Positions 37,615-50,919 are shown, counted from the first letter of the stretch. The stretch is DNA of 64,000 nt from Macrostomum lignano (GCA_002269645.1 NIVC01000731.1:186001-250000), one strand, 5' to 3'. Notes: generated by a model not told the origin, from the letters alone. Program-made: numbers and translations.

Positions 37615-39279
37615 ATGGAAACGCAGGACTCGACGGCGAGGGCGGCTGATTTGCCACGGCAGGTGCAGCTGCGGCCCGGCAGGCCGGCGGAGGATGCGGA
37701 GTTTGTGGCGCTGTGCGTTCGCGACTTGGCGGTCAGCCACGAGGGCATGCTGCCGTTCTGCCACATGGGCGCCAGCGACCACTTTCGGGTGCTGCAGTCC
37801 GGCCTGGCCCGTCTTCTGGTGGCCGAGGCAGCCGGACGGCCGGCCGGATTCGCGCTGTACACCCGGTGCCACCTGGACAGGCAGCCTAGGCCAGGACTCT
37901 ACCTGCAGGCTGTGTACGTGTGCGAGGACTACCGGGGGCTGAAGGTGAGAGCGATCAGTGAGGCTGTTATGATGTGCTTAACTAGCTACTTGTAGTAATA
38001 AGAGGCACACTTCTAGTAGTAGTAGTACTACTAATACTAATACTACTACTACTACTACTACTACTACTACTACTACTACTACTACTACTACTACTACTAC
38101 TACTACTACTACTACTACTACTACTACTACTACTACTACCGCTAACACTACTACTACTACTTGCAGGTAGGCAAGTCTCTACTCGTGGCTCTGGCTCGCC
38201 AGGCCTTGGCAACCGGCTGCGACCACATCAAGCTGATTGTGCACACAGATAACGAGGCTCTGTCCTGGTACCAGCGCATTGGCTTCCAGGTGCTCACAGA
38301 GACCGAGGGGGTCGCCTTTTTTGAAATGAATGACGTGGACTTTGTTGCTGGCCTGGTGGCCGCAGCCGAGCAGCCGCTGCCAGACGGAGCCAGCCTGCGC
38401 CTGCGGCCCTGCGACGGCGCCGACGGTAGGCGATTCGAACTCCGGACTTCCGGCTGCGACTGTCGCCTGTTTGGCGCCTCCGAGCTCAGCTACTGCATGT
38501 GGGAGGGAGAGGCGGTGCAGGTGAGAGCTCAGCTACTGCATGTGGGAGGGGGAGGCGGTGCAGGTGAGAGCTCAGCTACTGCATGTGGGAGGGAGAGGCG
38601 GTGCAGGTGAGAGCTCAGCTACTGCATGTGGGAGGGGGAGGCGGTGCAGGTGAGAGCTCAGCTACTGCATGTGGGAGGGGAGGCGGTGCAGGTGAGAGCT
38701 CAGCTACTGCATGTGGGAGGGAGAGGCGGTGCAGGTGAGAGCTCAGCTACTGCATGTGGGAGGGAGAGGCGGTGCAGATGAGAGCTCAGCTACTGCATGT
38801 GGGAGGGGGAGGCGGTGCAGGTGAGAGCTCAGCTACTGCATGTGGGAGGGAGAGGCGGTGCAGGTGAGTGCTCATAGGAGGCTTGAGCACAGGAGATGTA
38901 GAAACCCGTCAGCTTCCACTGCCAACCCCAGATCGACTTGTCGGCCGAGAGGCCGGTCTGCGCTGCCGCATCGGAGTGCGGCGCCGTCAGCTCCGCCTCG
39001 CTGAAGTGCCTGATGGGCCGCCTGCTGCAGCTGGCCGCTGCCGACAAGCCCACCCTACCGTCGCCGCATATCGTGTGGGTTGACACCGTCGCCAACCGAC
39101 CGACTTCCGGCGGACTCGATGACCTGCTGATGCGCGCCGGCTTCGAGAACAACACGGCCAATGAAGGCTGGCTGATCTGCCTGCTGGCCGGCCGGCCGCT
39201 GCACCTGCTGGCCAACAGGCCGCTGAACTGCCGCCTGCACCCGGAGCTGGCCGGCTGCCCGGATTCACTGTCTGACTGA
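37615..39279 (+). CDS. SSAT/diamine N-acetyltransferase-like double-GNAT protein, copy 1 (3 exons, 343 aa)
   Basis: Exons 37615-37944, 38167-38520, 38932-39279, all phase 0. VQLRPG..D, LLVAEA.GRPAGFALY, YLQAVYVCEDYRGLK|VGKSLL (motif A), NEALSWYQRIGF (motif B), then a degenerate second domain (SYCMWEG..IDL...GFENNTANEGW). Confidence 0.9.
37985..38160. repeat. (CTA)n microsatellite, GNAT copy 1 intron 1
   Basis: Direct reading. Confidence 0.97.
38481..38869 (+). repeat. 43 bp tandem repeat made of the exon 2 3' end plus the splice donor
   Basis: gagctcagctactgcatgtgggagggagaggcggtgcag|gtga x9. Confidence 0.96.
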
Positions 39280-39287
39280 GAGAGATG

Positions 39288-39450
39288 TGAGAGTCCTGAT
39301 CCCCACTGTGAGAGGCCTGATCCCCACTGTGAGAGTTCTGATCCCCACTGTGAGAGTCCTGATCCCCAATGTGAGAGTCCTGATCCCCACTGTGAGAGTC
39401 CTGATCCCCACTGTGAGAGTCCTGATCCCCACTGTGAGAGTCCTGATCCC
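39288..39450. repeat. 21 bp repeat (gtgagagtcctgatccccact) just after the copy 1 stop
   Basis: About 7 copies. Confidence 0.95.
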
Positions 39451-39879
39451 CTTATCTCCTTATCTCTGATCACAGGTCATCTTAGGGTTCGAGTCCTGAC
39501 TTTACAGTTGGACCAACGCTAATCTTCAGTATTTGATTTACTTCTATACTACTATGAGTACGTTCCGCTTATTCTGGTAATCTTTTATGCAAACTTTAAC
39601 ACAGATCTATCGCTTAGCAGCTCAAACTAAATCGCTGTTTTAATATATCCTTTTATGCTTAAATTTTAACACTTACACATTGCTCTAACAGTAGTGCGCT
39701 GTGCCTAATCTACTGTAGCTCTCTTAACGTATCAAGCACTCTACTAACTGATCGCTTGCTGTGCCTTAATATGTTCAACTTTATTTTCTGACTTTAACCT
39801 GTTTCTTAACAGAAGTTTTAGTTTTTTGTGGCACTAACCTACCTCACATTACATGCAATGTCCTTGATTCTTGACCCTT

Positions 39880-47830: not shown

Positions 47831-47886
47831 TCAGCAGCAGCCATATATTTCACCGCCACCCCGAATTCCAGCAGCTGCCAGCAGCC

Positions 47887-50800
47887 ATGAAGCCCGAATC
47901 CTCCACCGCCACCGTGGTGATCCGCTACGGCACGCCGGATGACATGTACCAGGTGACCTGCCACGAGAAGGAGCTGGCCAAGTGTCACGAAAACATGCTG
48001 CAGTACTGCAGGCTGGGCAGCGAGGCGCACCGCCAGATGCTCATGGACGGCCTGTTCAGGATTATGGTTGCCGAGGCCGAGGGCCGCGTCATCGGATACC
48101 TGCTGTACACCCCCTCCTACCTGCTGCGGCACGCTGAGCCGGGCTTCTACGTACAGAGCCTGTACGTTGAGCCGCTGTACCGCAGGCACCAGGTGAGGCG
48201 TCCCTCTGTGTGATTGCACTGTGAATGCACTGTGAATGCACTGTGAATGCACTGTGAATGCACTGTGAATGCACTGTGAATGCACTGTGAATGAACTTCT
48301 ATTTGGGGCTGTGGCATAAATTCGCTGCGACCCCAGGATATCCCACATTTTACTGTAAGAAACAGCATCTCATATTACCCCACTGCACCCCATAATACCC
48401 CACTGCATTCCATAATATCCCACTGCATTCCATAATACCCCACTGCACCCCATAATACCCCACTGCACCCCATAATACCCCACTGCATTCCATAATACCC
48501 CACTGCACCCCATATTACCCCACTGCACCCCATATTACCCACTGCACCCCATAATACCCCACTGCACCCCAGAATACCCCACTGCATTCCATAATACCCC
48601 ACTGCATCCCAAAATACCCCACTGCATTCCATAATACCTTACTGCACCCCATAATACCCCACTGCATTCCATAATACCCCACTGCACCCCATATTACCCC
48701 ACTGCACCCCATAATACCCCACTGCACCCCATAATACCCCACTGCATTCCATAATACCCCACTGCACCCCATATTACCCCACTGCACCCCATAATACCCC
48801 ACTGCACCCCATAATACCCCACTGCATCCCAAAATACCCCACTGCATTCCATAATACCTTACTGCACCCCATAATACCCCACTGCATTCCATAATACCCC
48901 ACTGCATTCCATAATACCCCACTGCATCCCAAAATACCCCACTGCATTCCATAATACCCCACTGCATTCCATAATACCCCACTGCATTCCATAATACCCC
49001 ACTGCACCCCATAATACCCCACTGCATTCCATAATACCCCACTGCACCCCATATTACCCCACTGCACCCCATAATACCCCACTGCACCCCATAATACCCC
49101 ACTGCATCCCAAAATACCCCACTGCATTCCATAATACCTTACTGCACCCCATAATACCCCACTGCATTCCATAATACCCCACTGCATTCCATAATACCCC
49201 ACTGCATCCCAAAATACCCCACTGCATTCCATAATACCCCACTGCATTCCATAATACCCCACTGCATTCCATAATACCCCACTGCACCCCATAATACCCC
49301 ACTGCACCCCAGAATACCCCACTGCATTCCATAATACCCCACTGCACCCCATATTACCCCACTGCACCCCATATTACCCCACTGCACCCCATATTACCCC
49401 ACTGCACCCCATAATACCCCACTGCACCCCATAATACCCCACTGCATTCCATAATACCCCACTGCACCCCATATTACCCCACTGCACCCCATAATACCCC
49501 ACTGCACCCCATAATACCCCACTGCATTCCATAATACCCCACTGCATCCCAAAATACCCCACTGCATTCCATAATACCTTACTGCACCCCATAATACCCC
49601 ACTGCACCCCATAATACCCCACTGCATCCCAAAATACCCTACTGCATTCCATAATACCCCACTGCACCCCATAATACCCCACTGCATTCCATAATACCCC
49701 ACTGCATTCCATAATACCCCACTGCATTCCATAATACCCCACTGCACCCCAAAATACCCCACTGCACCCCAGAATACCCCACTGCATTCCATAATACCCC
49801 ACTGCATCCCAAAATACCCCACTGAACCCCACGGTAGCACGGGGCATATTAAGAAGCCATAAATATCCCATACAACCAACCAGACCCGCACCGGCCCTCC
49901 CGCAGGTCGGCCAGTCGCTGCTGGCCACGCTGGGCCGCCTCGCCGCCTCCTCCGGCTTCGGCCACCTGAAGCTGTTGGTGCAGCACAGCAACGCGCCAGC
50001 CGTGAACTGCTACAGACGTCTGGGGTTCGATTTTCTAACCGAGACGGAGAACATCGGCTTCTTCGAGCTGTGGCCGCCGAAGTTTATCACTTCAACTCTG
50101 CAGGCGGGTCGCCGGCCGCTGCCCGCCGGCCTCCACCTGGAGCTGCGGGACTGCGGCGGCCGGCTGTCGGGCAAGCTGGAGACTGGGCGGCGGTTCGCCC
50201 TGACCTGCGCGGCCTGCGACTGCCGCCTGCAGGGCACCGTCGCTCTGACCTACTGCATGTGGGACGGCCCTGTGGCTCAGGTGAGATTTCTAGATTTCTG
50301 ATTGGCTCACACCATCTACCCAGTCCAGCTCTGATTGGCTGGCACTATGTACCCAGTCCAGCTCTGATTGGCTGGCACTATGTACCCAACTCAGCTCTGA
50401 TTGGCTGGCTCTGTACCCAACTCAGCTCTGGTGGGCTGGCACTATGTACCCAGCTCAGCTCTGATTGGCTGGCACTATGTACACAGCTCAGCTCTGATTG
50501 GCTGGCACTATGTACCCAGCTCAGCTCTGATTGGCTGGCACTATGTACCCAGCTCAGCTCTGATTCGCACGCTTCCCTTAAACGCTTTCCAGGCCGACTT
50601 GGAGGCGGTTCGGCCGAGCTGTCCGGCCCGCGGCTGCGCCCTGCTGAACGCGGCCAACCTCCGCCGGCTTTTTGGTCGGCTGCTGCTCACCTGCCTGCCT
50701 GTCCGGCCGGTCCGCCTGTGGCTGGAGGCCGGCCGCCGGGACTCCCGGCTGCGCCAGCTGCTCATCAAGATCGGGCTGGAGGACAGCACGGCCAGCGAGC

Positions 50801-50919
50801 TGTGGCACGTGTGCGACCTGTCCGGCCCCGGCCTGTCCGAGCTGGCCGGACGCAGCGTGGCCTGTCCGAGTGTTGGCCGACTGGCCATTGATGCAGGCGC
50901 CTTGACAGCGGAGCTCTGA
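47887..50919 (+). CDS. SSAT-like double-GNAT protein, copy 4 (3 exons, 335 aa)
   Basis: Exons 47887-48192, 49906-50280, 50593-50919, all phase 0. VVIRYGTPDD...VIGYLLY...FYVQSLYVEPLYRRHQ|VGQSLL...NAPAVNCYRRLGF...YCMWDGPVAQ|ADL. Confidence 0.9.
48205..49825. repeat. Compound intronic array: 10 bp (gcactgtgaa) at 48205-48290, then 20 bp (cccactgcattccataatac) at 48375-49825
   Basis: Direct reading. Confidence 0.96.
50300..50565. repeat. 33 bp minisatellite (ctctgattggctggcactatgtacccagctcag), copy 4 intron 2
   Basis: About 8 copies. Confidence 0.94.

Follow-up and report, generated by a model that had tools for sequence, protein, structure and literature searches.

Tandem paralogues that exchange sequence by interlocus gene conversion are exemplified by the human gamma-globin genes HBG1/HBG2, in which the conversion tract ends at a simple repeat in intervening sequence 2 (IVS2), by RHD/RHCE, by the opsins and by CYP21. 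Another well-described arrangement is that of UGT1A and the clustered protocadherins, in which a single constant exon set is used by all first exons. Here, an array of four acetyltransferase genes of the GNAT family (g1 to g4) in the flatworm Macrostomum lignano was analyzed, for which the preliminary description had proposed the second arrangement, i.e. divergent first exons that vary the acceptor site in front of a constant, cofactor-binding exon 2. The array is located in a window of 64,000 nucleotides of contig NIVC01000731.1 (assembly GCA_002269645.1, Mlig_3_7), and all positions are counted from the first letter of this window. The analysis indicates that the array very probably arose by tandem duplication followed by ongoing interlocus gene conversion bounded by heterology. 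The apparent division into a variable N-terminal half and a constant half for the cofactor is a side effect of recombination mechanics.

The cluster consists of four genes on the plus strand with intact open reading frames (ORFs). In the spliced models every intron is bordered by GT-AG and is of phase 0:

37615-37944, 38167-38520 and 38932-39279, plus strand: g1 (Mlig017646.g2), three exons, 343 aa
41785-42081 and 42257-42952, plus strand: g2 (Mlig017646.g3), two exons, 330 aa, without intron 2
45533-45856 and 45957-46628, plus strand: g3 (Mlig017646.g4), two exons, 331 aa, without intron 2
47887-48192, 49906-50280 and 50593-50919, plus strand: g4 (Mlig013841.g3), three exons, 335 aa

An in-frame ATG at 45521 is an alternative start of g3 and yields a protein of 335 aa. 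The GenBank products PAA77652-PAA77655 are the same as the four models apart from 4-5 additional annotated N-terminal codons. The database locus on NIVC01000731.1 (L001) is an exact match to positions 35518-56628. No copy beyond the four genes was detected by tblastn across the window, and the exon-2 homologues found there number four, one for each gene. Gene models and protein alignment agree with the earlier statement that all four genes carry a phase-0 intron at the same codon within motif A, as intron 1 occupies one alignment column in g1-g4 (YRGLK/VG, YRRHR/VG, YRRHR/VG and YRRHQ/VG, with the slash marking the intron). It falls between the residues aligned with Gly104 and Ile105 of human SSAT1, within the R-x-x-G-x-G motif, and divides the GNAT domain such that exon 1 encodes beta1-beta4, which corresponds to the alpha1-alpha2 region of the GNAT fold, and exon 2 opens in motif A/alpha3. 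Intron 2 of g1 and g4 is likewise of phase 0 and shares a single column; it is absent from g2 and g3. A common intron position is ordinary inheritance among paralogues and unremarkable alone.

Divergence between the four copies is not uniform along the genes. Synonymous divergence (dS) and the ratio of non-synonymous to synonymous divergence (dN/dS, omega) were computed segment by segment with the Nei-Gojobori method. Exon 1 pairs share 57-68% nucleotide identity with a dS of 0.61-0.88, and the g2-g3 pair shows 68% identity and a dS of 0.61. In exon 2 the same two copies are 99.5% identical across 652 nt (dS 0.01-0.02), which bears out the near-identity reported previously; over the exon-2 block up to ~50 nt short of the g2 stop, nucleotide identity is 99.3-99.5%. 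The tracts of elevated identity are as follows:

42251-42902, plus strand: recent conversion tract, g2 copy, 99.5% identical to 45951-46602
45951-46602, plus strand: recent conversion tract, g3 copy, partner of 42251-42902
49896-50268, plus strand: older, patchy conversion tract in g4, 90.6-91.2% identical to g2/g3, dS ~0.2

The tract in g4 covers 373 nt and corresponds to 42247-42619 in g2 and 45947-46319 in g3. The former estimate of about 90% identity over about 360 nt for this copy is therefore correct in its value, but its limit is merely the end of the 375-nt exon 2 of g4, over the whole of which nucleotide identity to g2/g3 is 89% and dS ~0.2. From segment to segment, dS between g2/g3 and g4 changes from ~0.86 in exon 1 to ~0.2 in exon 2 and ~0.7 in exon 3. 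The downstream half is thus not constant as had been supposed, since exon 3 of g4 has diverged like exon 1. The most diverged copy is g1, which displays a uniform dS of 0.7-1.1 to the other copies in each segment. It escaped conversion and has been homogenised with no other copy, so that the contrast between a divergent exon 1 and a homogenised exon 2 holds for g2, g3 and g4 but not for g1.

g2 and g3 share an uninterrupted stretch of up to 482 identical nt, whereas 10,000 column shuffles produced at most 103 nt. The corresponding stretches of g4 with g2 and with g3 are 57 and 70 nt (shuffle maxima 41 and 40 nt, respectively), and no significant run was found by this test between g1 and the other copies. 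An abrupt run of identity that includes synonymous sites, as present between g2 and g3, is characteristic of gene conversion. Within the g4 tract, identity to g3 is 97.6% in the first 125 nt and 87.8% in the rest; the differences form two patches (maximum chi-square, P = 0.034), and this patchiness suggests more than one conversion event. Separate trees recovered the topology ((g2,g3),g4),g1 in each segment, and branch lengths alone vary; the trees are congruent, yet divergence is non-uniform between segments. Omega of exon 1 ranges from 0.45 to 0.76. None of the values exceeds 1, so there is no excess of amino-acid change, and they are no higher than in g1 and are equalled or exceeded in exon 3 of g4 (0.66-0.96), which speaks against the proposed diversification of exon 1. 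The G+C content of third codon positions (GC3) is 0.93-0.94 in the converted block and 0.86 in exon 1 of g2 and g3, and this rise is compatible with GC-biased conversion.

The homogenised tracts fill the homology blocks and halt at heterology. The g2 tract takes in the last 6 nt of intron 1 (ccgcag) and stops 50 nt short of the g2 stop codon. This hexanucleotide is the only intron 1 sequence common to g2, g3 and g4, and g2 and g4 have ~7-10 nt in common. At its downstream side the g2-g3 tract ends at about exon-2 position 641-646, where the C-terminal tails turn unalignable. The g4 tract comprises exon 2 without the last 12 nt, together with ~7-10 nt of intron 1, and it ends 12 nt before the intron 2 donor, where collinearity with g2 and g3, which lack intron 2, is lost. 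In a self-blastn of 36-53 kb, the gene units displayed no mutual similarity outside the coding exons. No inter-unit similarity exists in introns, 3' tails and spacers, so the flanks are not co-duplicated, which argues decisively against both a recent duplication of whole units and a single unequal crossover. The units are unalignable outside the exons because tandem arrays fill the introns and spacers, where 16 minisatellite or microsatellite arrays were located with Tandem Repeats Finder (TRF). Unlike minisatellites start at the stop codons of g2 and g3. TRF arrays in and between the genes include:

38482-38874, plus strand: 43-nt minisatellite at the end of g1 exon 2 and in intron 2, ~9 copies
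39885-41630, no strand assigned: 20-nt minisatellite in the g1-g2 spacer, ~88 copies
48365-49824, no strand assigned: 20-nt minisatellite that fills intron 1 of g4, ~73 copies

The most homogenised block is the longest, i.e. the 696-nt fused exon, and blocks of 300-330 nt (the first exons and exon 3 of g4) are unhomogenised. This relation between block length and homogenisation is suggestive, not proven.

Three more contigs of the same assembly harbor the cluster (L002, L003 and L004, of which L004 stops inside exon 1 of g3), and their exons are 99.1-100% identical to those of the window. These contigs are near-identical haplotigs, which provide two informative haplotype classes and no diverged homeologous cluster for dating the conversions. 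Within L002 and within L003, g2 equals g3 over exon-2 positions 1-641; in the window, g2 and g3 differ at two sites, both private to g2. Exon-2 positions 391 and 441 are C and C in g2 as well as g3 of the window but G and T in both genes of L002 and of L003, and the variant at position 391 is the identical Leu/Val replacement in g2 and g3. Haplotype variants common to both paralogues are a signature of interlocus conversion after the haplotype split. Paralogues thus follow their haplotype as in concerted evolution, at two sites of a polished assembly. Haplotype differences in g2-g4 comprise 16 synonymous and 3 non-synonymous changes and all ORFs are intact; therefore, the genes are under constraint. 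Minisatellite copy numbers, and with them intron lengths, differ between haplotigs, with 1713, 1776 and 986 nt for intron 1 of g4 (window 48193-49905) and 175 vs 303 nt for intron 1 of g2 (window 42082-42256). L002 looks recombinant, as its g2 and g3 are like those of L003 and its g4 equals the window at 7/8 variable sites.

Several further observations concern g1. At position 320 of its exon 1, a run of five G is shortened to four in L002 (6346-6674) and L003 (6347-6675), which shifts the frame just before the intron 1 donor. In these haplotigs g1 is annotated as products of 235 aa and 180 aa, and the gene is intact in the window and in L004. The frameshift reflects either pseudogenisation specific to a haplotype or an assembly error in the homopolymer. 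The unit of the 43-nt minisatellite in g1 consists of the final ~37 nt of exon 2 plus the GTGAGA donor, and the same array is present in L004 (21861-22286) with ~11 copies. As the array repeats the donor, it provides a succession of candidate 5' splice sites that are all identical. The first of these appears to be the one required for an intact ORF, since 43 is not divisible by 3 and read-through into the first repeat meets a stop codon. The UniProt model P0007 contains an alternative g1 junction that leads from exon 2 to inside exon 3.

The sequence of events that very probably produced this pattern can be outlined. The copies would have been born of old tandem duplications, as the dS of 0.6-1.0 in unconverted segments suggests, and intron 2 would have been lost in the ancestor of g2 and g3. 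Minisatellite turnover would then have overwritten introns and spacers and left the exons as the sole remaining homology blocks, and interlocus (non-allelic) gene conversion would copy sequence among the paralogues within the exon-2 block. Between g2 and g3, conversion would be recent and continuing over the 696-nt fused exon, and with g4 it would be older and patchy over the 375-nt exon 2 of this gene. Tracts would stop where the alignment stops, i.e. at the intron 1 acceptor, at intron 2 of g4 and at the non-homologous C-terminal tails of g2/g3. Exon 1 (~300 nt) would escape conversion and diverge further under relaxed purifying selection. From this we infer heterology-limited conversion with a length-dependent escape of exon 1. 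Identity at synonymous sites, the tracking of haplotypes and tract ends at the limits of alignability argue for conversion and not for selection on a constant cofactor module, and the proposal of such a module is further contradicted by a near-identity that runs into the C-terminal domain. One unequal crossover within intron 1 was also considered and rejected, because all downstream sequence would travel along, but identity ends ahead of the stop codon and the spacers show no relationship.

All four proteins match PF00583 (GNAT) with 45.7-55 bits at a cut-off of 20.7 in approximately residues 55-150, and the Pfam match of g1 has an E-value of 9e-12. Among proteins of solved structure, the best matches (1e-10 to 5e-6) are to plant NATA1-like/GNAT8, thialysine acetyltransferase and SSAT1. 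All four copies retain the counterpart of SSAT1 Tyr140 as well as the beta4-alpha3 and alpha4 motifs. The replacement Tyr140Phe is reported to abolish SAT1 activity (PMC7271128). At the position of SSAT1 Gly104, the first glycine of R-x-x-G-x-G, the four copies harbor K, R, R and Q, respectively. All of them also contain a glutamine at the position of SSAT1 Glu92, which we take to be the proposed general base. These residues suggest an atypical catalytic or cofactor-binding arrangement that is common to the whole family, and the proteins are probably amine N-acetyltransferases with atypical catalytic residues. Such SSAT-like enzymes with a glutamine at the general-base position and an altered motif A are possibly of modest interest for flatworm amine metabolism.

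Each protein additionally possesses a C-terminal domain of ~170 aa (approximately residues 165-330; e.g. 42450-42952 in g2) with the invariant motifs CDCRL and YCMW. No match to this domain was found in Pfam at E<=10 or in a PDB profile search at E<=10. When it was aligned with the N-terminal GNAT profile by HHalign, the sole match had a probability of 0.2% and placed 'RLRQLLIKIGLED' on the alpha4-beta6 motif. In a profile search of 1.8 billion protein representatives, the C-terminal domain and the two-domain architecture were found in M. lignano only. The matches outside M. lignano cover the GNAT domain only, and many of them are proteins of 320-335 aa with two GNAT domains, both of which match the single domain of the query. 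AlphaFold2 on the alignment of the four sequences yielded a mean pLDDT of 53.6, which is too low for a fold search, and a beta-beta-beta-beta-alpha-beta-alpha-beta-beta pattern that resembles beta2-beta7 of the GNAT fold. This prediction is a hint, not proof, that the domain is a degenerate GNAT half. A literature search on the locus tags returned no papers.

The genes are probably part of polycistronic, trans-spliced transcription units. Approximately 7% of the transcriptional units of M. lignano are polycistronic precursors, and the Mlig_3_7 annotation is based on transcripts, with units split into genes at experimentally mapped spliced-leader (SL) and poly(A) sites (PMC5730564). The SL acceptor motif of this species is [T/C]TNCAG, and trans-spliced neighbours in one orientation were counted as operons if the distance between them, with repeats subtracted, was below 1000 bp (PMC8629364). 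Each of the four annotated coding sequences (CDS) begins 0-1 nt past such a motif:

37597-37602, plus strand: candidate SL acceptor of g1, TTTCAG; annotated CDS start 37603
41766-41771, plus strand: candidate SL acceptor of g2, TTGCAG; annotated CDS start 41773
45511-45516, plus strand: candidate SL acceptor of g3, TTCCAG; annotated CDS start 45518
47866-47874, plus strand: candidate SL acceptor of g4, TTCCAGCAG; annotated CDS start 47875

The raw spacers span 1.2-2.6 kb owing to minisatellites. After subtraction of the TRF arrays, the stop-to-acceptor distances are 580, 901 and 413 nt, all below 1000 nt. The consecutive tags Mlig017646.g1-g4 designate an upstream gene of 307 aa, g1, g2 and g3, whereas g4 is Mlig013841.g3. 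At least g1-g3 would accordingly have been cut from one assembled precursor, and all four genes would be SL trans-spliced. The array conforms to the definition of M. lignano operons (PMC8629364), with trans-splicing deduced from the method of annotation. The M. lignano spliced leader has an ATG at its end (PMC8629364). If trans-splicing occurs at the inferred sites (37603, 41772, 45517 and 47872-47875), this ATG would share the reading frame of the open upstream codons in g1 and g4, but not in g2 and g3. Short reads are unassignable in exon 2 of g2, g3 and g4, so expression and RNA interference studies will cross-hit.

Several points weigh against parts of this interpretation. The polycistronic organization is deduced from locus-tag naming, motifs and spacing. 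No canonical AATAAA/ATTAAA is located between the g3 stop and the g4 start (46629-47886), and behind g1, g2 and g4 such a hexamer is first reached after 1.1-2.5 kb, past large minisatellites. The concerted signal between haplotypes consists of two sites in two haplotype classes only, and the haplotigs stem from a single polished PacBio assembly of a polyploid line, in which short-read polishing over near-identical copies could distort single-nucleotide differences. However, polishing is unable to produce the contrast of 68% vs 99.5% identity, which recurs on four contigs with different flanks. Finally, four sequences cannot separate selection against conversion of exon 1 from neutral escape.

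Selection might have shaped the modularity in addition. Conversion would then be tolerated or favoured in the cofactor half and opposed in exon 1 by differing acceptor specificities. This would be an add-on to conversion and not an alternative to it, and we consider it possible but rather unlikely. It would account for a homogenised stretch that starts exactly at motif A/alpha3, behind an exon 1 that encodes beta1-beta4, and for the position of the part most identical across g2, g3 and g4, which is the first 125 nt encoding alpha3-beta5-alpha4; the genes are also intact and constrained. However, omega of exon 1 does not surpass that of g4 exon 3 or g1, and the tract also takes in ~80-170 codons that belong to the C-terminal domain, a region unconnected with acetyl-CoA. 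The tract ends coincide with the ends of homology, as a neutral model predicts. The glutamine at the Glu92 position and the non-glycine residues in motif A leave canonical activity uncertain.

Conversion could also have been mediated by cDNA, such that spliced, reverse-transcribed mRNA recombined with the genes and erased intron 2 from g2 and g3. The absence of this intron from g2 and g3, in comparison with g1 and g4, agrees with such a process, as do tracts that begin at most 6-10 nt from the intron 1 acceptor. However, the 6-10 intron nucleotides common to g2, g3 and g4 are not suppliable by cDNA, although they may partly reflect splice-site consensus. The gene structures are explained equally well if the ancestor of g2 and g3 lost the intron once and was then duplicated, and the g4 tract halts at an intron that is still in place. 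Thus, a contribution of cDNA is quite improbable.

A combinatorial system as in UGT1A or the protocadherins would splice the divergent first exons to any downstream exon 2 and thereby generate a matrix of variable acceptor sites and constant cofactor halves. Intron 1 is of phase 0 throughout with canonical donors and acceptors, so that, as had been pointed out previously, the reading frame would be kept in every combination of exon 1 and exon 2. The genes are co-oriented and probably located on common polycistronic precursors, which would place heterologous donor-acceptor pairs on one pre-mRNA. Phase-0 introns and polycistronic precursors make cross-copy splicing physically possible, yet it is without support. 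Each gene is complete, no single constant exon set exists, and the transcript-based annotation contains collinear products only. An older UniProt model (P0003) links exon 1 of g2 with g3 sequence, but it joins this exon to a cryptic acceptor inside exon 1 of g3 and not to exon 2, and it belongs to the same UniProt model set as the frame-shifted P0005, P0006, P0008 and P0009. This set presumably stems from an older, error-rich assembly. The fusion and chimera models P0003, P0005, P0006, P0008 and P0009 were rejected as evidence of cross-splicing on account of frameshifts and intron read-through. Moreover, a swap of exon 2 between g2 and g3 alters just the last 10-17 residues and would thus contribute hardly any diversity, and identity at synonymous sites is accounted for by conversion. 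The combinatorial system is therefore scarcely plausible. A restricted form, in which some polycistronic transcripts cis-splice exon 1 of one gene to exon 2 of the next or next but one and yield chimeric GNATs (g1/g2, g2/g4 and g3/g4) that are translated and differ in function, is only marginally less improbable. If true, it would represent an operon-embedded, paralogue-based exon shuffling at the RNA level.

An assembly or polishing artefact, by which collapsed or cross-polished paralogues appear near-identical, is conceivable, as the genome is polyploid and very rich in repeats and its assembly is redundant (PMC5730564), but it is hardly credible given that four independent contigs share the structure with differing unique flanks, introns and minisatellite lengths, that identity changes abruptly at defined points on all contigs, and that exon 1, introns and 3' tails of g2 and g3 stay distinct.

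The surroundings of the array contain further coding sequences. A single-exon ORF of 510 aa (59929-61461, plus strand), 9 kb downstream of the acetyltransferase array, matches the MFS/Sugar_tr transporter families (6e-26). An uninterrupted ORF of 942 aa (13933-16761, plus strand) has no Pfam match. A RhoGAP fragment (32233-33246, plus strand) precedes the cluster, and L002 and L003 likewise have RhoGAP genes annotated upstream of it. The match of a Gly-rich repeat ORF (11202-12086, minus strand) to the 'Lamprin' family is probably due to low complexity.

In comparison with operons of M. lignano (PMC5730564, PMC8629364), the array shares one orientation, an acceptor before each mRNA start, consecutive numbers under one unit prefix and a repeat-adjusted spacing below 1 kb. 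In contrast to these operons, the cistrons are paralogous to each other, and the operon status is read from sequence and annotation. With SSAT1/2, thialysine acetyltransferase and NATA1/GNAT8, the proteins share the PF00583 fold, the Tyr140 equivalent and the beta4-alpha3 and alpha4 motifs; they differ from the SSAT/NATA1 subfamily in the added C-terminal domain of ~170 aa, the glutamine in place of Glu92 and K/R/R/Q in place of Gly104. In common with UGT1A and the clustered protocadherins, the locus has several diverged first exons that agree in orientation and phase and lie upstream of near-identical coding sequence. However, the 'constant' part consists of four separate copies, only two of which are near-identical to each other, and the analogy to UGT1A fails as the exon 2, the exon 3 (where present), the stop codon and the 5' trans-splice site are separate for each first exon.

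A close parallel is concerted evolution of the HBG1/HBG2 type. In both cases divergence between tandem paralogues flips between approximately zero and saturation, including synonymous sites, paralogues within a haplotype are closer than alleles between haplotypes, and tracts end at simple-repeat or heterologous intron sequence. In M. lignano, unlike in these systems, the tract edges are exon edges in two separate events, because minisatellites replaced every intron and spacer, and the longest homology block was made by intron loss. The array is thus a worked example of how ectopic conversion, when confined by repeat-driven loss of homology, yields exon-precise mosaics in a tandem family, and such mosaics can pass for a designed variable/constant architecture. 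It represents a known evolutionary mode in a new and tidy instance.

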